From positions 4,908,992 to 4,962,894 of the forward strand of contig BFEA01000034.1 of the NCBI GenBank assembly GCA_003427395.1: DNA of 53,903 nt, read 5' to 3'. Origin of the DNA: Chara braunii (Eukaryota; Plantae; Charophyceae). Made by a program: the position numbers and the translations under genes. The notes beneath the pieces were generated by a model. The model ran no database searches, was not told where the DNA came from, and was given only the letters and a program-made list of their open reading frames with translations. Positions 3,531-50,841 of this stretch are shown here, piece by piece. Positions within the stretch are counted from its first letter, which is position 1. Each line of letters begins with the position of its first letter.

Positions 3531-4223
3531 GTGTCGGATGGCCCAGTGGTTAGGGCACCAGTTGGAAATGCACATTGTGGTCTAAGGTTGTGGGTGCAAA
3601 ACCCCGGAGCCTCGTGCATAGGCCGATGGCAGGGTGTTACGTTGACGCACTACCACTCACACACTGAGCGCGCACGTGGCCAGGGGGCATGGTGCATAGA
3701 CCTGACCTGGGGTCCACCTGAGAGGGTGCCCAGCAGATACCCAACAGATACTAGCCCCCTGTATATTCCTGGGTCCTCCGGAATGGCAGGCGCGCTTGGG
3801 GTTGCTGGAGGCCATGGGGGGAGATGGCTCCGGGAGGGGCAGGCTCAGTGGGGATGAGGGAGGAGTGAAGGGTTCACCCCCTTCCTAGCAGGAGTGACTC
3901 CCATACCCACAGCACCTGGTGACTTCGGTGCATTGGCCTCCCGGCCGGGTGCCTCGATGATGCAGGACCCTGAGTTCGAAGGGGGTGCACCCTGGGGCAG
4001 AAGTTTAGTAGCTCTGGTCCAGGCTGATACTACGGGGAGTGTAGCAAGGTCTCTCTTCTCCCCCTTCCTGAGAGTCCTGGTCTTGAGTGATATCTGATTG
4101 AGCGGGTGGGCCTGCTGTGCCGGCAGGTGGGCTGAACCCAGCGTGTGAAGCCCCCTGCCGGACCTCCTCCCAGGCTGGGTCATATCCCCGACACCCGGAA
4201 CCCTTAAAAAAAAAAAAAAAAAA
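3531..4223 (+). mobile_element. tRNA-derived SINE
   Basis: A box TGGCCCAGTGG, B-box-like GGTGCAAAACC, poly(A) tail ending at 4223, TGAACTGGG repeated in both flanks. Confidence 0.6.
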
Positions 4224-4329
4224 GATTTTGAACTGGGATGGTGGTATGGCAGATAACTGTCAAGTTCCTTAGCATGATATGTTATGCTTGTACTCAAACA
4301 CACACCGACTAGTTCAACTTGGTGAAAGT

Positions 4330-4640
4330 TTGAGAATTTCAACCTCCTGGTGAGTTGGTGAAAGTCCGCTGAAACAGTCTACAAGCACAGTTGTGCTTTT
4401 TTTCTGTGGAGTTGTTTATAGCGAACTCGACAACACACTGATGAGTTCATGCGAGTTCAATGAAACAGTCTATCGCACTCAGTGTTTTTGTGATTGTGCA
4501 TGCAATTTCCGAACATGACAACAAAAGTGCACACACGCACACACACAAACTGATGAGTTGGTGAAAGTCCGATGAAACAGTCTGGCACCGTCATGCTTTT
4601 TGGTCGAGTTGTGCATAGCGAACATGACGACAGCACCCAC
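4330..4640 (+). ncRNA. Tandem array of three degenerate type III hammerhead ribozyme units
   Basis: CTG(A/G)TGA-stem II-GAAACAGTCT cores at 4347, 4438 and 4550 (spacing 91 and 112 nt). Confidence 0.75.
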
Positions 4641-4663
4641 ACACACACACACACACACACTGT

Positions 4664-4745
<82 letters not shown>

Positions 4746-5486
4746 CACAAGCAGTTTCTGTTTCTAAGTGAGCACCTCTAACTAAGAAGTGCCTAATATT
4801 CATTGACAATGTGGGTTCGTTTGGAGTGCCCACAAGACTAGTAGAGGGGCTGCTCTGTTCGGAATGTCCGCGGGTGCATGTTCCATGGGTGGATGACAGA
4901 CGTTCTGTGGGGTTCCGGTTGTGGTGTGAGTAGGTGATGGGCTGCTTTGGTCTGTGCTGGATATGTAGACTGCGTTGTTGACGTCCTCCACTGCTTTGCT
5001 TTACTACCCACCCGCTTACCATCATGGTGTCTTTCCTTGCAGCTTTGTCTGTTTGCTGTGTAGTCTGGCTGCCTCGTCAGTGATGCTTTGTGCCTCACTG
5101 AATCGTTGCCTAGCTGCCCATCCGCGTGGCTTGTCTCACTGTGCAGTTTGCTTGCTTGCAGTGTACTTGGGTGCTCCGTCAACTGCTTTACTAACCGCCT
5201 GAAGTTGTTTCACATATAGTCTCTGAGGATCCTACACAGACAAATGTTCAGTGCATTGTTGCCCTGCTGCCCATCCGCTTGTGTTCTCTTTCCATGCAGT
5301 TTGGTTGTGTCGGGTGCAGTTGGGCTGCCTTGTTCGATTTTTCCCTGGTGCTTTGCCGAGTCATTGCGTTGCTGCCTTTGTTCCAGTTGCGGTGTCAGCT
5401 GCGAGCTGCCAGGCCATGCTCAACATCATGATGTGTTGAGAGAGTTCATGACTCAAAGCATCAAGATGCGGATTCCGTAGATCACC

Positions 5487-5531
5487 GAGGGTTCAGCCTC
5501 CTGACGAGTTGTGCAAGTCGGACGAATCAGT
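5487..5531 (+). ncRNA. Degenerate hammerhead copy
   Basis: GAGG-GTTCAG-CCTC CTGACGA ... GACGAATCAGT; stem-loop I identical to the 8219-8270 copy. Confidence 0.6.
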
Positions 5532-5619
5532 GTGTCACCATCCCAGAGCAGGAACTGACAGTTGTCAAAGCGCTAATTCGGTGCCGGCGTCAGGCCGGGT
5601 CCGTGACGAGGAGAAGGCA

Positions 5620-7612: not shown

Positions 7613-8218
7613 NNNNNNNNNNNNNNNNNNNNNNNNNNNNNNNNNNNNNNNNNNNNNNNNNNNNNNNNNNNNNNNNNNNNNNNNNNNNNNNNNNNNNNNN
7701 NNNNNNNNNNNNNNNNNNNNNNNNNNNNNNNNNNNNNNNNNNNNNNNNNNNNNNNNNNNNNNNNNNNNNNNNNNNNNNNNNNNNNNNNNNNNNNNNNNNN
7801 NNNNNNNNNNNNNNNNNNNNNNNNNNNNNNNNNNNNNNNNNNNNNNNNNNNNNNNNNNNNNNNNNNNNNNNNNNNNNNNNNNNNNNNNNNNNNNNNNNNN
7901 NNNNNNNNNNNNNNNNNNNNNNNNNNNNNNNNNNNNNNNNNNNNNTTGCACGTGAGAGGCACAGTGGAGGTGGAGTTCAAAGAAGAATGAGAAATTTAAT
8001 GGTTTCAATCTGCCCTTGTTTTTTCTTTTTCTTTTTATTTTTGCATGTTATCACTGTGCCCGTTTTTTGTTTTTATTCTTTGTTCCGCAAAGTGCGCTCT
8101 TTTAGTTTGTAGTGATGTGACAATATATATATAAATATGTATATCGTCACAAACAGAACTGCGCGGTAAGCCGTAGGCAGAGAGAGAGAAGAGGACAACA
8201 AACGAGGGGCTGTGACAA

Positions 8219-8270
8219 ACTGTTTCGTCGGAGTTTCACCGACTCATCAAGAGGCTGAACCCTCAACAGT
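8219..8270 (-). ncRNA. Type III hammerhead ribozyme (near intact)
   Basis: Minus strand reads ACTGTT GAGG GTTCAG CCTC TTGATGA GTCGG TGAAACT CCGAC GAA ACAGT; all three stems pair perfectly; core has C3 changed to U. Confidence 0.85.
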
Positions 8271-8404
8271 CTCCAGAATCCCCTCACCGATTACACTGTA
8301 AATGATAATCTACCTTAACCAAAATCAAAGTAGACTATCACTCACCCACACCAGATGGAAAACTCTACAGACTGTCGGTATATATATATATATATATATA
8401 TATA

Positions 8405-9101: not shown

Positions 9102-9782
9102 TATATATATATATGTATATGGGCGTGCAGATTAAGAAAAGCTCTACATGCCTATGATTTTTAATATTTTTTTGTGATATTTACTGGAAGGAAAAAAAAA
9201 AAAAAAAAAAAAAAAGTTTCGGTTGTGNNNNNNNNNNNNNNNNNNNNNNNNNNNNNNNNNNNNNNNNNNNNNNNNNNNNNNNNNNNNNNNNNNNNNNNNN
9301 NNNNNNNNNNNNNNNNNNNNNNNNNNNNNNNNNNNNNNNNNNNNNNNNNNNNNNNNNNNNNNNNNNNNNNNNNNNNNNNNNNNNNNNNNNNNNNNNNNNN
9401 NNNNNNNNNNNNNNNNNNNNNNNNNNNNNNNNNNNNNNNNNNNNNNNNNNNNNNNNNNNNNNNNNNNNNNNNNNNNNNNNNNNNNNNNNNNNNNNNNNNN
9501 NNNNNNNNNNNNNNNNNNNNNNNNNNNNNNNNNNNNNNNNNNNNNNNNNNNNNNNNNNNNNNNNNNNNNNNNNNNNNNNNNNNNNNNNNNNNNNNNNNNN
9601 NNNNNNNNNNNNNNNNNNNNNNNNNNNNNNNNNNNNNNNNNNNNNNNNNNNNNNNNNNNNNNNNNNNNNNNNNNNNNNNNNNNNNNNNNNNNNNNNNNNN
9701 NNNNNNNNNNNNNNNNNNNNNNNNNNNNNNNNNNNNNNNNNNNNNNNNNNNNNNNNNNNNNNNNNNNNNNNNNNNNNNNNNN

Positions 9783-10712
9783 CCACCAATAATAGGCAGC
9801 CCGTGGATGTTTTTGTCAAAAAAAAAGGAAAAAAAAAAAAGAAAGAAAGGCCTCCCCTCTTGCTGCAGGCTGCACATGCCAGACAGAAAAGAAGAAAAAA
9901 AGGAAAGAAAGGCCTCCCCTCTTGCTGCAGGCTGCACATGCCAGACTGAGTTAGGGGGGGAAGGGGGGTGGCCATGATTCACTTGGAGAGAAACAGGCAG
10001 GAAATTTAAATAAAAATTGGGAAAAAGATCAAGGATATGGCCAAAAAAAAAAAAAAAAAAAAGATATGGCCATTACTTGCAAAATATCCATGCGGAGATG
10101 TAACATCTTGACATAACTTGGGCTCACTCCCTCTAACAAAGAGGATTGGATTCCATGCCAGCATCTGGACGTGTTTGTGGAGAGGTGCAGGAAATTGCAA
10201 TTGATCTGCTGTTCTGCATCTCTGGCTAAAACCTATCCAGATTCACGTGGTTGATCCAATCCCGTTTTGCTTGTGGGACTGTGTCCCTTAACTGATTCAT
10301 CATAGAGGCTGATGATGAAAAGCAAAACTGAGCTGGGTGGAACTCCACATTGAGCTCGGATTAAAGAAAAAAAAAAAAACATTGAGCTGGGATGAAGAGG
10401 GCAATCTGATCCAGCGGCCTACCTCAGTTGGTAAGGCATGCAAGTGGCATTCAGGAGGTCTTGGGTTCAATCCCCATTGGCCTCATGTATCTTCCTGGGC
10501 ATGCTTGGCGCCCGCCACCTAGAGATAGCCCGTTGGTCCCCCCAATTGGCATTAAAAAAAGCAGGCTCTGCTGATGTTCATAGGGGGAGGGGTAATCGGG
10601 GAGGCACAGCGACTGGCCGCTCAGATGATGCTCGGTCCCTCTGTCACCGGCTGTCCCCTGGCCGGTGCCCCCCGTTGGGGGTTCCCTGAAGGCTATCAGG
10701 CCACCCGAGACC
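9783..10712 (+). repeat. Apparently identical copy of 30830-31759 (probable assembly artefact)
   Basis: Same sequence and ORF track at an offset of 21047; bounded by an N gap and a Nextera adapter. Confidence 0.9.
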
Positions 10713-10768: not shown

Positions 10769-11302
10769 GGTTATGGGTGGTGGGAACATTTAGGGGCAGT
10801 TAGGGGCGGTTGGGGACAGTTAGGGGTGGTTAGGGGAGGGGGGGAACATTTAGGGGGAGTTAGGGGCGGTTGGGGACAGTTAGGGATGGTTAGGGGAGGG
10901 TGGGAACATTTAGGGGCAGTTAGGGGCGGTTGGGGACAGTTAGGGGTGGTTAGGGAAAGTGTGGATGGTTATGGGTGGGTGCATACAATTGTGGGTGGGT
11001 TTGGGTGGGTAGGGGTGAAAAACAAAATTGGTTGGGTATGGTACAGGTGGTTAACAAAAGGTTTGGGTGTAGGTGGTCATGGGTAGTTTTGAAACAGAAA
11101 GTCCATGGGAAGTTATGGGCAGTTACACTCTGAAGGGGTTCAGGAATGGCAGGTACAGGTACACGTTTTTCTTTTTTGAGCAGGTAAGGATGGGTAAAGG
11201 TCCAGCATGCCATCTATACAGTGGGTATGAGTGGTTAGTTTTCAAAGAGGGTATGGGCAGGTAAGGTACAGGTATTCCAAAAAATCCCAGTTGCCACCTC
11301 TG
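10769..11302. mobile_element. Right end of a non-autonomous hAT-like element with a G-rich 60-bp minisatellite
   Basis: Ends TTGCCACCTCTG (reverse complement CAGAGGTGGCAA); GGGTATG subterminal repeats; TTAGGG-containing units at 10770-10960. Confidence 0.55.
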
Positions 11303-26990: not shown

Positions 26991-28115
26991 CTGATGGGGG
27001 GGGAACATCCTGTGAACCTCATGGATGGAAGAATTCCACGGGTTGCTCACTCAACAACACCACGATTTGCCAAGGCAAGTCTTGTTGGAGGGAGAGGAGA
27101 TATTTGTTGGATGGGAGGAGGAGCTTTATGCAAATCTTTCTTTGCAACAGTTGGGCGACACGAACAATGCAACTGTGATGGCTGAGCTGTGTGAGTGTAC
27201 CAGAATCCTTGAGAGGTGAAAGAGCTGTTCACGGAGCTTTTGCCAGGAGGAGATGAGGGTTGTCCGCCTGGCGAACAACGATCACCTTCTCTAGATGGAG
27301 TTCATTAATCCCACGGACAGGAAAGGGAGAGTGTACAGAGTGAGAACGAGGTGGTGTAGAGTGAGGACAACGAGGTGCACCATTACCTAGCAACTGATGA
27401 CAAAGGGCAATATATGGATGCACAACTACAACTACAATTACAACACCAGAGCCTTATCTACAACCCCCCAGTGGTGATGGGTACTGGAGCTCCTATGACA
27501 AGTGATGAGGGGGTAATGGATGACATGGCGTGGCGTGTGGAGGCTCAAGTGCGATTGCAGCAATATCCATCGTTTGAGGACGATGAGTTGCACATGAAAG
27601 CTCAATTACAACTAGGGCAACAAACTCCCACTGGATCCCCTAGAGCGGCAATCGGCCTCCCCGGAGAGGGCCAAAACCTGCTCCAGGAAACCCCGGACCC
27701 TCTCCAGCCTCACGGTGAAAAGCACTTACAGGATGCTTAGGGTCTGCTGAGACTTGAAAGATGTAATAACTGATAGGTGGCATATGGATGTGCTCCAAGG
27801 ATGGAAGGGGGACAATAGCAGATCCAAGGGATAACGGAGCCCCAGGAAGAGACAACTATCACCACAGCCCTAGGAAACAACAAATACCAATATCTTTGTA
27901 TTGTAAGATGTATCAATGGGACGTTGGACCCGGTTTCCAGCAGGTGCCGCTCCCCACCAATAGATGGAGCAGCCTGACAGATAAGCCCTCAATTCTGACG
28001 GTTCTCTTACCACCGCCAGGATAGAGGGATATCGCAAGGGCTATTNNNNNNNNNNNNNNNNNNNNNNNNNNNNNNNNNNNNNNNNNNNNNNNNNNNNNNN
28101 NNNNNNNNNNNNNNN

Positions 28116-29600: not shown

Positions 29601-31460
29601 ACAAACGGTTCCTTGCCGTCTCTTCTCCCTGGTAACAACGGAGGCTGAGGTGAGGGAGAGGACTTTCTTTTTTTTTTTTTTTTTTTTGGACTGAACAAGG
29701 GTTACGAGATCTTCATGTCCCTGATCAGGAGCTGCTGAAGATAGACTGTGGAAACGGAAAACGGCTTGATCAGGCAAATGATGTGCTGCACGGGGATTTT
29801 CAACCTCATCTGTGACAAGACAAACGAGTAACAACAGTTGCCCCTGTGCACTGCTAGAGAGGGACATCAGGGCGGGCAGTGGGTGCAGCAGCAGGACAAG
29901 GCGCCATCAACGTGAGATGGGTTGGCAGATCTATCGACTAAAGGTAGGCGTGTTGGCTGGGTTGGAGGGTTGTGGACTCCTCGTTCAGGTTGGAGCGGTG
30001 CGCAGAGGAATGGCGCCCCCATCGGGAGAAGGGGAAGGGGAGCCCTATGGTGGTGGGTCCCGGATGGGAAGACGGGTATCCAAGATCCTGTGGGGGAAAC
30101 GATGGGGGAGTGAACGACCAGGGCAGACAGAAGGAAGGCGGCTACGGGTCTGGATCGTTGCCACGTCAGCTTTGACAAAAAGCTTGGTATCCACCTGCAG
30201 CTGCCTCTGGATAATAATCAGACAAATAATAAAAACGACATAGAGGCCACGTGGCCTTTTTTTGCTAGTGCTCAAGTAATGATGATAGGCATACACCACT
30301 TGGCGCGTTCTCCACAACATGCTGTGCCCGCCCATATTTTAGGAAATTTCTGGTCATCGTTTGAGATGTGCGAGTATGGGTTTCAAAATCAGATACTGCA
30401 ACTGAGACCTGATGCCCGCATTTTTGGAATTTCCTGTTCATCGTCTGAGAAGGGTGGGTATGACTTTTAAAATCAGATACAGTAGTTGCGGCCTGATGAG
30501 TGGATGAGATAGGAGGGTGGGTAGTGTGTTTGTCTGGATTGGAGGGGTCTGGGGATTCTCCTTCATTAGGGTTTGGTAGGTAGCTGGGCATATGATTGAT
30601 CAAGCTGTTGCCAGGAAAAAGGTTAGTCCACCATCTCGGTCTGATGGGCAGTCAATCCCCTCCGAGTCGTCTGAGGGCAATCAATGCTGTCCGTCGTCTA
30701 CAGCTTACATCTTGCTCCGCCTTTGTAATTGGGACGCTGGACCCGGTTTCCAGCTGGTGCAGCTCCCCACCAATAAGATTGGAGAGCCATCTATAACAGG
30801 GAGCCTATTATTGGAGGATGCTCTTATCACCACCAATAATAGGCAGCCCGTGGATGTTTTTGTCAAAAAAAAAGGAAAAAAAAAAAAGAAAGAAAGGCCT
30901 CCCCTCTTGCTGCAGGCTGCACATGCCAGACAGAAAAGAAGAAAAAAAGGAAAGAAAGGCCTCCCCTCTTGCTGCAGGCTGCACATGCCAGACTGAGTTA
31001 GGGGGGGAAGGGGGGTGGCCATGATTCACTTGGAGAGAAACAGGCAGGAAATTTAAATAAAAATTGGGAAAAAGATCAAGGATATGGCCAAAAAAAAAAA
31101 AAAAAAAAAGATATGGCCATTACTTGCAAAATATCCATGCGGAGATGTAACATCTTGACATAACTTGGGCTCACTCCCTCTAACAAAGAGGATTGGATTC
31201 CATGCCAGCATCTGGACGTGTTTGTGGAGAGGTGCAGGAAATTGCAATTGATCTGCTGTTCTGCATCTCTGGCTAAAACCTATCCAGATTCACGTGGTTG
31301 ATCCAATCCCGTTTTGCTTGTGGGACTGTGTCCCTTAACTGATTCATCATAGAGGCTGATGATGAAAAGCAAAACTGAGCTGGGTGGAACTCCACATTGA
31401 GCTCGGATTAAAGAAAAAAAAAAAAACATTGAGCTGGGATGAAGAGGGCAATCTGATCCA

Positions 31461-44359: not shown

Positions 44360-44719
44360 NNNNNNNNNNNNNNNNNNNNNNNNNNNNNNNNNNNNNNNNN
44401 NNNNNNNNNNNNNNNNNNNNNNNNNNNNNNNNNNNNNNNNNNNNNNNNNNNNNNNNNNNNNNNNNNNNNNNNNNNNNNNNNNNNNNNNNNNNNNNNNNNN
44501 NNNNNNNNNNNNNNNNNNNNNNNNNNNNNNNNNNNNNNNNNNNNNNNNNNNNNNNNNNNNNNNNNNNNNNNNNNNNNNNNNNNNNNNNNNNNNNNNNNNN
44601 NNNNNNNNNNNNNNNNNNNNNNNNNNNNNNNNNNNNNNNNNNNNNNNNNNNNNNNNNNNNNNNNNNNNNNNNNNNNNNNNNNNNNNNNNNNNNNNNNNNN
44701 NNNNNNNNNNNNNNNNNNN

Positions 44720-46703: not shown

Positions 46704-49700
46704 ATCACTAAGGGCCAAGATAGGTAATGCTTACGACTACTGGAGTTTAAATAGGTAAGCTGACGAGAGGCCATCGGAGTTCTTCGTAGGAGGAGCCACT
46801 TATCTCTGCGTAAAGTCAATAATTCGTTGTAGCTGTGCTTGGTCTAGAAACTTCTTTTTCCAAGGATATAAGTCCAACCAGATGTAATGCCTTTGCTGTC
46901 GGCCATCGGAGAGCGTAGGTTGTAGGATCGAGCAGGTACTGTGAAACTCCATCTTAGAGTAGAGGAAGTCGGAACGATAAGGGTGAATGAGGTAATNNNN
47001 NNNNNNNNNNNNNNNNNNNNNNNNNNNNNNNNNNNNNNNNNNNNNNNNNNNNNNNNNNNNNNNNNNNNNNNNNNNNNNNNNNNNNNNNNNNNNNNNNNNN
47101 NNNNNNNNNNNNNNNNNNNNNNNNNNNNNNNNNNNNNNNNNNNNNNNNNNNNNNNNNNNNNNNNNNNNNNNNNNNNNNNNNNNNNNNNNNNNNNNNNNNN
47201 NNNNNNNNNNNNNNNNNNNNNNNNNNNNNNNNNNNNNNNNNNNNNNNNNNNNNNNNNNNNNNNNNNNNNNNNNNNNNNNNNNNNNNNNNNNNNNNNNNNN
47301 NNNNNNNNNNNNNNNNNNNNNNNNNNNNNNNNNNNNNNNNNNNNNNNNNNNNNNNNNNNNNNNNNNNNNNNNNNNNNNNNNNNNNNNNNNNNNNNNNNNN
47401 NNNNNNAAAGAGATAATGAAGGGTAGGAGAGGCGGAAAGAGAGAGGACGAAGTTGGGAGGGAGGGAAGATGGATGTGGGAGAGGTAGAGGAAAAGGAAAG
47501 GAAAGGGACGGTAGCCAGCGGGTTAGGGGGAGAGAGGTGTCAGGCGAAGGTGATCAAAGCGACAGGAAAAAAAAAACAGAGTTTGGAGAGAAGAAAGCGG
47601 GTTTGGTGGGAAGAGCGGCAGCGCGACGGTGCTGAATTCGCGAGACCGGCGCAGCCGAAAGAAGGAAACGAATGCGTACGCAGGGAATATAAATCGGGTT
47701 CTGCAGGGGAAGCCGACCTGTAGGCCGATCAGGCGCCGAAAAAGCTTGACACGGTTACCGTCTGATTGGAAACGTTTCAGACTGCTATCTTTGCAGGGCC
47801 CTCTATCTATAGGCACTTGGAAAACCCAACTTGGGCCTTGCTTCCTTTTTCCACGGCTTCATCCCGACTCTATTCCGAACCCCTTTTTTTCATCAAGAAG
47901 GGTACCCTATGTTTGCCTATTTTCAAACCATCCTGAGGACCCTGTTTCCCGCTGATATAGGATGTAGGTTCTATCAGAAGAATTGTTTCCAATGGGTCAG
48001 GCAGAATACCCAGTCCTTCCAACAATCAGCAAATTTTTCGAGAGAAGGCAGAAAGAGTATTATCAAAACAATGATATGGGTAGCCTCTCAGTCTGAGTTC
48101 CTTCTTTAGTGTAAAGAGGAAGGCCAGCTCTGCAAGAGGCATAGTGGCGAAGGTTCTAGCTCTGTGCAAAAATGAACTGATGACAGCGAGTTTTTGTTGT
48201 TTGCTAGAGAAAGAAGAGAAATCTTGAATAGCTTGAAAGGAAATAGTGTCAGATGCAAGCATAGGAGCCTGATTGCGATGAGTAGGAGCACAATGTATAC
48301 CCGTAGGTTGTGGAAAGACTTGTAGCTGGCAGCCCAAAAAATCTCATCTTCCACTGGAACTGGTTTCTTCCAAGGTCAGGTTCCTGTCGTAGCAGCTTCT
48401 GAACCGGTGCAGAATGTGGTTTGCCTTCCTTCGTGACAACTGATTCCCTTGCTTGAAACTGACAAAGATGGATACATCATCCACCAATCTTACACCATGG
48501 ATCAAAGTGCGATCCTTCCCTAGAGAACAAAGGAAGTGGAATTCGTTATACATGCATAACATGGCTGCCAGAGCAAGGCTTGAGGATTTGCCATAGGAAC
48601 TCCGACGTTCTGTTTGAGTAGTTTTTACCCTTGGCCATAACGTAAGTGTGTTGAAGATCGAAGTCGACAAAATCTTCTATTGATGTGAAGCTTATGACTT
48701 TCCAATCTATGATAGACTTACTTAACAAGAGTTTGGCTGCTTTGCCTCTCTTTTTTACCCAGACCCCGTCATACCCTTGGAACTTAAAACAGTAAGAGAA
48801 CCATCGGACTGCATCTCGGATAGAAGAATGAGGTAATCTGCTGAACATTTCCTTAACATCAAAACTTGCACTAATGAGAGCATCAAAGGTGGTGATAGAA
48901 CTGTTGATTTTGTCCAGAGTCGGCGCTAAATCCTGCATACTATACAGGTTGAAATGTGGCATTGTAGTCAAGTTCTTCACCAGTATGTTGAGACAGGCTG
49001 TGATTCGTTTGCAGGCCAGAAGAGAAGGTTCAAACGACGTAGGATAGATTGGTCGCCACTTCCGTACATCCTTATGTTTGGGAATAGCGTAACCCTTCCC
49101 TAGCTACCTTTCCTATTCCAATTGCCTATTGACCCAAAGTGGGAATCACAAAACTTTGTTCGACGTTCCTCCATAATAGTAGCCTCATCTTTATCTTTAA
49201 TAATGCAAAAACCGGGGTTTTGTAAGAACAACGTATTCATACCACGCTGGTAGTAAACAGGATAGCAGAACAATGTGTCACCGAGATTATGGTCCACGGG
49301 TACCGATACTAGGCCATCTAATAGCTCTTTCCATTTGAAGACACTTTGGGGGATGAAGGGAAGTCCACGTAAGTCTTGTAGACGGTGAGGGAGCGATGGG
49401 GTGTTATCAGGAGTTATGGGGTCAGGGGGAGGGGGAGAGGAAGAGGGAGGGGGGGAAAAAAACCGCACGAGGGGTTAATGGCAAATGAGACAGAATTGAG
49501 TGTGTGATGCTTGAAGCAGGATTTTAGTGAAATGGTTGGTATAAAGAAGGTAGGGGGTTTAGGTGTGAGAGAGGGAATGTTCTTGAGGGTGCAAAGCAGT
49601 TGTGAGCGCAGGAAGGCTGGAGTGCATGGAGAAGAAGGAGGAATGTTGCGAGAATTAAGGAGCCAAGAAGGAAGCATGGTAGAATCTTTAGATCTGAAGG

Positions 49701-50841
49701 CGATGTGTCCATTTATAGTGGGGAGCAATGAGCTGAGGAGTGCATAATTAGAGTGAGACATAAGCTTATCTGTGAGGAGGGAGGAATCAGTTGCAATGAG
49801 CTCAGAGAAGTGGCTACGAACCTTATGACAAGCGCAGAGCAAACTGGGTTGGCGTGAGAAAGACCGGGAATTGTGTAATAGTTGTGCCAAACACTTGTTT
49901 TTTGTCCATACTACGCGCATTCGGCGCGAGCGCATACTGGCTAATGAGGAGGGAATATTAGTTTCATGAATCAACCGAGCACATAGACAACGAACAGCAG
50001 ATTTGGAAAGCTTGTCAGAGTATTGGATCCGGAAAATGAGCCGTTTTCGAGGGGAGATCCCAAACTTCCGTCGAAAGGTATTGGATAAGATAGCACGCAG
50101 TGATTGTCTCGAGGCCTTCTTTGAAAAACACCTGACCACATTATATGCAATAATCAAATTATCGAATGACCATTTATACAAATTCTTCCTCTCATACGGA
50201 TGACTAAGGAAACGAGAAACAGGCATCTTCAGTGACTCAGAACGTGAGCAAAATTTCGAGACAGATTCTACCTTGAATACACATTCATTTTTGAACCACG
50301 TCATACAGTATGCTGGTCCCTGCCAAACATGCTTGTTATTACAGATGCACCAAAGACTCGTTTCAGAACCTTCCAAGAATCAGGCAAGATACAACCACCC
50401 TTCGAGACAACAGAAAAAAAATTAATGCCTAGCCGAACGCACTCATCAAAGATATGCATCAATGACATCGACGAGATACCGACCGAGGTAACAAAGAAGG
50501 CTAATCTTTGGTTACGAGGTTGTCTGCCATCTTCAAGCAGTTCATACTTAGATGTATGAGTGAGTTGCCTCTTCCTGGCCACTCTGAGCCTTTCACGCTT
50601 GCCTGGTCTGCAGTGCTTACCTTTCTTCCTTCTATTACTAGCCGCTTTACTATTCAGATAGGGAGAAGCCCAGCTAATGAGCTTAGATTCCACAAGCAGC
50701 AGGTCAGAAGTCCGGGATTTAGCACGAGGTATAGCGACGTAGTTGTGAATGTCTGCCCTTCGTAACCATGTGTACAATCTGTGGTTTCGAACAACACCCG
50801 AAGAGACGTTCAGGGAATTGGTACGATGAACATGCTCATAC

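Follow-up and report, generated by a model that had tools for sequence, protein, structure and literature searches.

Positions 4305-4632 of a 53,903-nucleotide stretch of Chara braunii DNA (contig BFEA01000034.1; the whole stretch is called the window below) probably consist of three stacked, old and 5′-truncated 3′ ends of a short non-coding hammerhead retroposon that integrates into (CA)n. The anatomy of the stack, that is, the 3′ end, the 5′ ends, the orientation of the copies, the microsatellite and the position of the hammerhead, fits the insertion mode of Chlamys elements, and we therefore read the block as a stack of truncated retroposons.

Direct reading of positions 4100-4900 and a repeat finder showed that a 34-nt core block is present three times, head to tail, at 4347-4380, 4438-4471 and 4550-4583, such that the units of the array are spaced by 91 and 112 nt. 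Each block has the order core, stem II, GAAAC and AGTCT, and the motif GAAACAGTCT is common to all three units. When the copy at 4347-4380 was taken as the reference, the core blocks of units 2 and 3 were 76% and 94% identical to it, respectively. The number of chance matches to the core block with three or fewer mismatches was 0.00 expected for the window, and the pattern GATGA-N10-30-GAAACAGT was observed three times in the window versus 0.08 expected. All three units are in the same orientation, and their pairwise identities range from 73 to 78% (78% for units 2 and 3, and 78% for units 1 and 3). Because the units are only 73-78% alike, the array was not called as a tandem repeat by TRF at its thresholds. 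These results bear out the original prediction of three head-to-tail units at 4330-4640, for which the expectations for the core block and for the pattern leave little room for chance. That prediction had also assigned CTGATGA and GAAAC motifs to all three units, which is correct for units 2 and 3, whereas the core of unit 1 reads CTGGTGA. The coordinates of the array and of the related copies are collected in the table.

Table. Hammerhead-bearing units, their borders and related copies in the window
Feature	Position	Strand	Description
Left (CA)n remnant, (CA)4	4297-4304	.	Direct reading
Unit 1, longest copy	4305-4437	+	5′ end within 4305-4332; complete but decayed type III hammerhead, followed by the 3′ tail
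Unit 1 hammerhead relic	4324-4380	+	Direct reading and alignment to family copies
Unit 1 3′ tail	4381-4437	+	GCA/TGC hairpin 4385-4396; T7 4397-4403; tail hairpin 4409-4434
Unit 2	4438-4523	+	Starts at C3 of the core; CTGATGA 4438-4444
Unit 2 parts		+	Stem II 4445-4461, degenerate; GAAACAGTCT 4462-4471; T5 4485-4489; tail to 4523
CA-rich junction, interrupted (CA)n, units 2/3	4524-4549	.	26 nt
Unit 3	4550-4632	+	Starts at C3 of the core; CTGATGA 4550-4556
Unit 3 parts		+	Stem II 4557-4573; GAAACAGTCT 4574-4583; T5 4597-4601; GGTC 4602-4605; tail hairpin 4606-4631
Right (CA)n microsatellite	4633-4749	.	TRF 4634-4749, period 2, 58 copies
Further decayed family copy	5479-5533	+	CTGACGA; GAAT for GAAA; stem II (shortened) and stem III broken
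Best-kept family copy	8217-8272	-	Type III hammerhead; C3 to U (TTGATGA)
Element around 8217-8272 (-)			About 235 nt; (TA)n on both sides, 8123-8144 and 8379-8404

Behind each core block lies a tail of about 55 nt that contains a small GCA/TGC hairpin, a run of 5-7 T residues and a GAGTTGT-N14-ACAAC hairpin; the hammerhead of the array copies is located about 55 nt from their 3′ end. The GAGTTGT...ACAAC hairpin was found after every unit (4409-4434, about 4493-4523 and 4606-4631), and in unit 1 it is followed by ACA, which joins to unit 2. All of the units share the same tail end, ...CGAACATGACAACA, i.e. ...CGAAC(A/T)(T/C)GAC(A/G)ACA, which then gives way to CA repeats.

Two further features of the units were observed. 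The GCA/TGC hairpin together with its T5-T7 run (4385-4403, 4475-4489 and 4585-4601) lies about 5 to 15 nt past the ribozyme in each unit and resembles an element-internal stop signal of the Pol III or intrinsic type. A compensatory change in this small hairpin was considered and rejected, as only the GCA/TGC pairs are conserved in all units. The 11-mer TTGGTGAAAGT is present three times, at 4319-4329, 4355-4365 and 4558-4568. Two of these occurrences constitute the stem II loop, and the third is situated where the 5′ strand of stem III would be expected in unit 1, which suggests a small conversion or duplication inside that unit.

The window also contains dispersed members of the same hammerhead family. 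The best-kept copy, 8217-8272 (-), scored 38.4 bits with Rfam Hammerhead_3 over the whole model with stems I-III, which is below the gathering score of 48.5. The minimum free energy (MFE) structure of 8215-8274 (-) is a three-way junction of -19.2 kcal/mol, and this was the only hammerhead fold among the regions that were folded. A BLAST search within the window showed that stem II and its loop in the array are 83-87% identical to those of 8217-8272 (-). The predicted kinship with the stem II loop of a ribozyme at 8219-8270 was thus confirmed, except that stem II of unit 2 is broken. The same type of search showed that the copy at 5479-5533 (+), which was absent from the original prediction and is located 730 nt downstream of the (CA)58 tract, on the same strand as the array, is 77% identical over 70 nt to the 8127-8378 element. 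Since the identity among the array units (73-78%) is as low as that among the dispersed copies (77%), the copies are old. The Rfam alignment of 8217-8272 supports a type III topology for the family ribozyme. The earlier view that the block is the relic of a hammerhead-bearing retroelement is also supported. The element of about 235 nt, which together with its (TA)n flanks spans 8123-8404 (-), begins with CCGACAGTCTG, a sequence similar to a hammerhead end (the 3′ strand of stem II plus CAGTCT); judged from its sequence, this may be a partial upstream copy.

Alignment to these dispersed copies revealed how far each array unit extends in the 5′ direction. Unit 1 aligns to 8272-8217 (-) from the 5′ strand of stem III through stem I into the core (GAGAATTTCAACCTC versus GAGGGTTCAGCCTC), whereas in both pairwise and multiple alignments units 2 and 3 align to the dispersed family only from CTGATGA onward. 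In the 9 nt preceding the core, the in-register match to the stem I of the family was 8/9 for unit 1 (binomial P about 1e-4), compared with 3/9 for unit 2 and 1/9 for unit 3. It follows from this pattern that, in this family, the type III hammerhead is contiguous and its stem I short, and that unit 1 retains stem I. The alignments indicate that C3 of the core is the point at which units 2 and 3 are truncated. Comparison of 4224-4323 with the upstream portions of the other hammerhead copies revealed no significant homology.

The 55-nt tail has no further copy in the window, and it showed no significant similarity to the sequences flanking the copies at 8217-8272 (-) and 5479-5533 (+); a candidate tail homology at AGTTGT..AGCG was dropped for the same reason. 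The concept of a 3′ end common to the family therefore draws on only the three local units. As judged from these comparisons, the tail is specific to a subfamily that is known here only from those units.

The stack is embedded in a (CA)n microsatellite, and the borders of its units are microsatellite sequence rather than a ribozyme cleavage site. The tail of unit 1 is followed by ACA, that of unit 2 by a 26-nt interrupted CA sequence and that of unit 3 by GCACC and about (CA)58. The (CA)4 on the left, the CA-rich junctions between the units and (CA)58 on the right all point to the (CA)n insertion bias of Chlamys/Penelope-like retroposons. The units likewise show the 5′ truncation, shared 3′ end and head-to-tail order of such elements, with 5′ ends that differ between unit 1 and units 2 and 3. 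The placement of the tails also bears on the claim that units 2 and 3 carry a different, longer stem I (GAGTTGT...ACAAC). A hairpin of this kind does exist after each unit, but what was taken for a long stem I belongs to the 3′ tail of the copy before it, and 3 or 26 CA-rich bases lie between this hairpin and the core that follows.

The 5′ ends of units 2 and 3 coincide within 1 nt, at C3 of the core. For two truncations that occurred independently and at random, with uniform probability over roughly 130 nt, a shared 5′ end would be expected in about 1-2% of cases. Because this coincidence is improbable, part of the stack may be the product of a local duplication or of a single multi-copy event. 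A local duplication between CA tracts, a single multi-copy event and a preferred 5′ end are all possible explanations for the shared end. Judged by the pairwise identities of 73-78%, units 2 and 3 do not stand out as sisters.

None of the array units has the type III three-way junction with contiguous stems and a cleavable NUH site that self-cleavage would call for. The core of unit 1, at 4347-4353, has G in place of the invariant A6. Its stem I (GAG/CTC, 4332-4346) directly precedes the core, stem II (4354-4370) has a U-C mismatch and a C to U change at 11.1, GAAA is found at 4371-4374, and stem III is reduced to the single A15.1-U16.1 pair. In unit 2, CTGATGA and GAAA are intact and stem II is broken. 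Unit 3 also has intact CTGATGA and GAAA sequences, and its stem II is the best kept of the three, with 5 bp (GTTGG/CCGAT) and a G-U at 10.1-11.1. The alignments showed that next to the core of units 2 and 3 there is neither a stem I nor a cleavage site, and that the 5′ strand of stem III is likewise missing. As originally predicted, each unit carries a hammerhead core; however, the assignment of a type III core to every unit does not extend to units 2 and 3, which contain only the part from the core to the 3′ end and have no hammerhead fold.

Homology searches and folding gave a similar picture. Rfam did not detect a hammerhead in the array, either at the gathering score or at E<=10, when 54 kb and 6 kb were searched, so that at this scope the Hammerhead_3 search proposed earlier returned no match in the array. 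When only 351 nt were searched, the result was an alignment involving unit 3 of 14.0 bits (E=4.3) with a 53-nt 'loop' in stem I, compared with the gathering score of 48.5. MFE folding of each unit and junction yielded no hammerhead fold, with z-scores from -1.9 to +1.4. The MFE structure of unit 1 (z = -0.6) is not a hammerhead, and a hammerhead-shaped structure of this unit had an energy of +5.3 versus -11.9 kcal/mol for the MFE structure. For 4400-4473, the junction that comes closest, the hammerhead-shaped fold was +0.9 versus an MFE of -18.5 kcal/mol; in that fold the base at position 17 would be G, and three unpaired bases would separate the hairpin from C3. All three array ribozymes are dead, and neither self-cleavage nor release of a ~100-nt RNA is expected from this locus. 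The idea that the units are self-cleaving monomers of ~90-110 nt from a tiny tandem retrozyme is not supported, as units 2 and 3 lack those parts of the ribozyme that lie 5′ of the core.

In the mechanism that we propose, the copies would have been made by target-primed reverse transcription, catalyzed in trans by an RT/GIY-YIG enzyme of the Penelope-like (Chlamys-type) class. The RNA would pair through its CA-like 3′ end with a nicked (TG)n strand, and incomplete cDNA synthesis would give rise to the 5′ truncations. The head-to-tail order could result from repeated hits on the same microsatellite or from a single event with template jumping. The role of the ribozyme in an intact element would be to trim transcripts that are multimeric or result from read-through. 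We also considered a more specific origin for the shared core start of units 2 and 3, namely a family-wide hot spot at which RT stops at the base of stem I of a ribozyme-cut RNA. According to this reading, the cut would leave stem I as a 14-15-nt terminal hairpin where a Penelope-type RT stops. Alternatively, the upstream tail hairpin would replace stem I, resulting in a hammerhead split across the junctions. Either version seems quite improbable to us. If a core hot spot were real, it would be a genomic footprint of ribozyme-cut RNA serving as template.

Other explanations of the array were weighed against the stack of truncated retroposons. Microsatellites are prone to slippage and unequal exchange, and such events between (CA)n tracts could have duplicated one truncated insertion locally, thereby generating units 2 and 3, with unit 1 being a separate, longer insertion or the original. 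This scenario would account for the nearly identical starts of units 2 and 3, both at C3 and no more than 1 nt apart, and for the CA repeats that border each of them. We nevertheless consider it unlikely, as units 2 and 3 (78%) are no more alike than units 1 and 3 (78%), and as the core block of unit 3 is nearer to unit 1 (94%) than to unit 2, which is itself 76% identical to the unit 1 reference. It is more doubtful still that units 2 and 3 represent a full-length mini-element of ~85 nt, running from CTGATGA to GACAACA(CA)n, i.e. a minimal parasite of Penelope-like machinery that has kept only the 3′ region recognized by RT. The two units do have an identical 5′ start, a conserved tail and a CA-like 3′ end, but they are the only two examples and both are decayed, unit 1 continues upstream into stem I, and no further copies were found in the 54 kb. 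Our estimate is that such a mini-element is highly improbable.

The array could also be the relic of a type III tandem retroelement of ~100 nt, in which the tail hairpin and the core together form the hammerhead and circularized monomers undergo rolling-circle reverse transcription. Several observations are compatible with this explanation: the units are head to tail with spacings of 91 and 112 nt, GGTC/GAG before the tail hairpin of unit 3 resembles a GUC cleavage triplet, CTGT at 4404-4407 is able to pair with ACAG past GAAA, and the tail hairpin has been retained in 3/3 units, once by way of a U-G wobble. However, the array does not consist of equal monomers, since unit 1 has a canonical short stem I at the place where a tail and (CA)n are found in units 2 and 3. 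Moreover, the core junction would be disrupted by the 3 and 26 CA-rich bases between the hairpin and C3, the only close junction has a G at position 17, and the array ends exactly at the long (CA)n tract. The hammerhead-shaped form of 4400-4473 is also far less stable than its MFE structure (+0.9 versus -18.5 kcal/mol), and Rfam gave either no match or 14 bits at best. A tandem retroelement of this size is thus very unlikely, and we continue to favor the stack of truncated retroposon ends.

Mobilization by a local Penelope-like RT had been suggested on the basis of the window. A Penelope-like region at ~48-53 kb on the minus strand contains a weak CCHC knuckle (Pfam, E=0.0068; motif at about 53062), and a motif scan of this region found one CCHC and one LVDD. 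The ORF pieces of the region had no RT or GIY-YIG match in Pfam or the protein atlas, and a protein search found no relatives of the ORF at 49414-50376 (-). The RT ORF at 12924-13379 had only relatives of <=38% identity. BLAST detected no similarity between the local Penelope-like copy and the array units; the 3′ side of this copy lies in the N gap 46997-47406. The copy is decayed and 44 kb away, and so it has no special claim as the mobilizer of the array. The suggested mechanism of mobilization is plausible in view of published work on such elements (PMC8557442), but not its attribution to this copy, whose RT was not confirmed and which has no special link to the array.

Wider searches were carried out with sequences of the array and of its family. 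A metagenome scan with GAAACAGTCT-N25-45-ATAGCGAAC identified 32 loci, 0/32 of which had a hammerhead core upstream; all of them are therefore chance matches. A viral scan with the core plus stem II identified two contigs of one phage that carry an unrelated type III hammerhead with the same stem II and loop. This intergenic phage hammerhead (IMG/VR L001 3338-3365 (-) and L002 3909-3936 (+)) has a 28-nt stretch comprising the core, stem II, loop and GAAAC that is identical to 8217-8272. Since it differs in stems I and III, the identity probably reflects convergence in a small sequence space. A full-text literature search with the core sequences found no match.

Inspection of the remainder of the window revealed several other repeats. 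Pieces resembling U6 snRNA are present at 18522-18584 (-), 18633-18673 (-) and 20141-20250 (+), the best of which scored 54.3 bits. Because the match of the best piece is confined to the 3′ 63 nt of the model, these are probably fragments of U6 retro-pseudogenes. Identical sets of A-rich tandem-repeat calls at 9818-10062 and 30865-31109, which are 21 kb apart, indicate two copies of a poly(A)-rich retroposon end or of a segmental repeat. An interstitial 30/60-nt tandem repeat of TTAGGGG-like decamers, a telomere-like motif, was found at 10770-10955. N-run assembly gaps occupy 7613-7945, 9228-9782, 14792-15140, 22661-22789, 28046-28115, 44360-44719 and 46997-47406; several of them adjoin microsatellites, and many of the long listed 'ORFs' run across gaps.

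Although the array locus itself is dead, decayed DNA, its organization suggests that type III hammerheads in Chara braunii travel with short non-coding retroposons that resemble Penelope/Chlamys elements in their behavior, unlike those of plant LTR retrozymes. Our reading supports an emerging view in which 'retrozyme-like' hammerhead repeats are non-autonomous Penelope-like derivatives, and would extend it from type I hammerheads of animals to type III hammerheads of a streptophyte alga. The general idea of retrozymes as non-autonomous Penelope-like derivatives is already known (bioRxiv 10.64898/2026.07.22.740005). The recurrent start of copies at the catalytic core offers a minor clue to how ribozyme cutting and reverse transcription may be coupled.

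Chlamys-type Penelope-like elements of the green lineage have a preference for (CA)n, are frequently 5′ truncated and form partial tandems (Craig, Yushenova, Rodriguez, Arkhipova 2021, PMC8557442). Non-autonomous Chlamys derivatives with multicopy head-to-tail insertions have been described for Chlamydomonas, not Chara, and the Chlamys-2_cBra element of Chara braunii has a gag-like CCHC ORF and a canonical 3′ hammerhead (PMC8557442). In contrast to Chlamys-type elements, the array block is without a coding part, and we liken it to them by anatomy, not by tail sequence. Plant LTR retrozymes carry their ribozyme in LTRs of ~350 bp, have a PBS, a PPT and a 4-bp target duplication, and produce circles of 600-1000 nt (Cervera, Urbina, de la Pena 2016, PMC4918200). 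The array family resembles them in having a type III hammerhead, in being non-coding and in belonging to the green lineage; 8217-8272 (-) aligns over the whole of the Hammerhead_3 model (Rfam RF00008), and unit 1 has the same layout. TRF, a repeat finder and BLAST within the window identified no LTR-sized direct repeats around the array, and neither a PBS nor a PPT was found. Metazoan non-LTR retrozymes contain type I hammerheads and consist of up to tens of complete-ribozyme monomers of 170-400 nt that give rise to linear and circular RNA of unit length (Cervera and de la Pena 2020, PMC7229834), and animal retrozymes have been argued to be non-autonomous derivatives of Penelope-like elements (Li, Clavereau, Pollet 2026, bioRxiv 10.64898/2026.07.22.740005). 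The array is similar to metazoan non-LTR retrozymes in that short non-coding, hammerhead-bearing repeats are arranged head to tail. Conversely, the array family is of type III, its units of 86-133 nt have (CA)n borders, and 2/3 of them are without the 5′ third of the ribozyme. Taken by analogy with these systems, the array behaves as a non-autonomous Penelope/Chlamys retroposon rather than as a plant LTR or metazoan non-LTR retrozyme.
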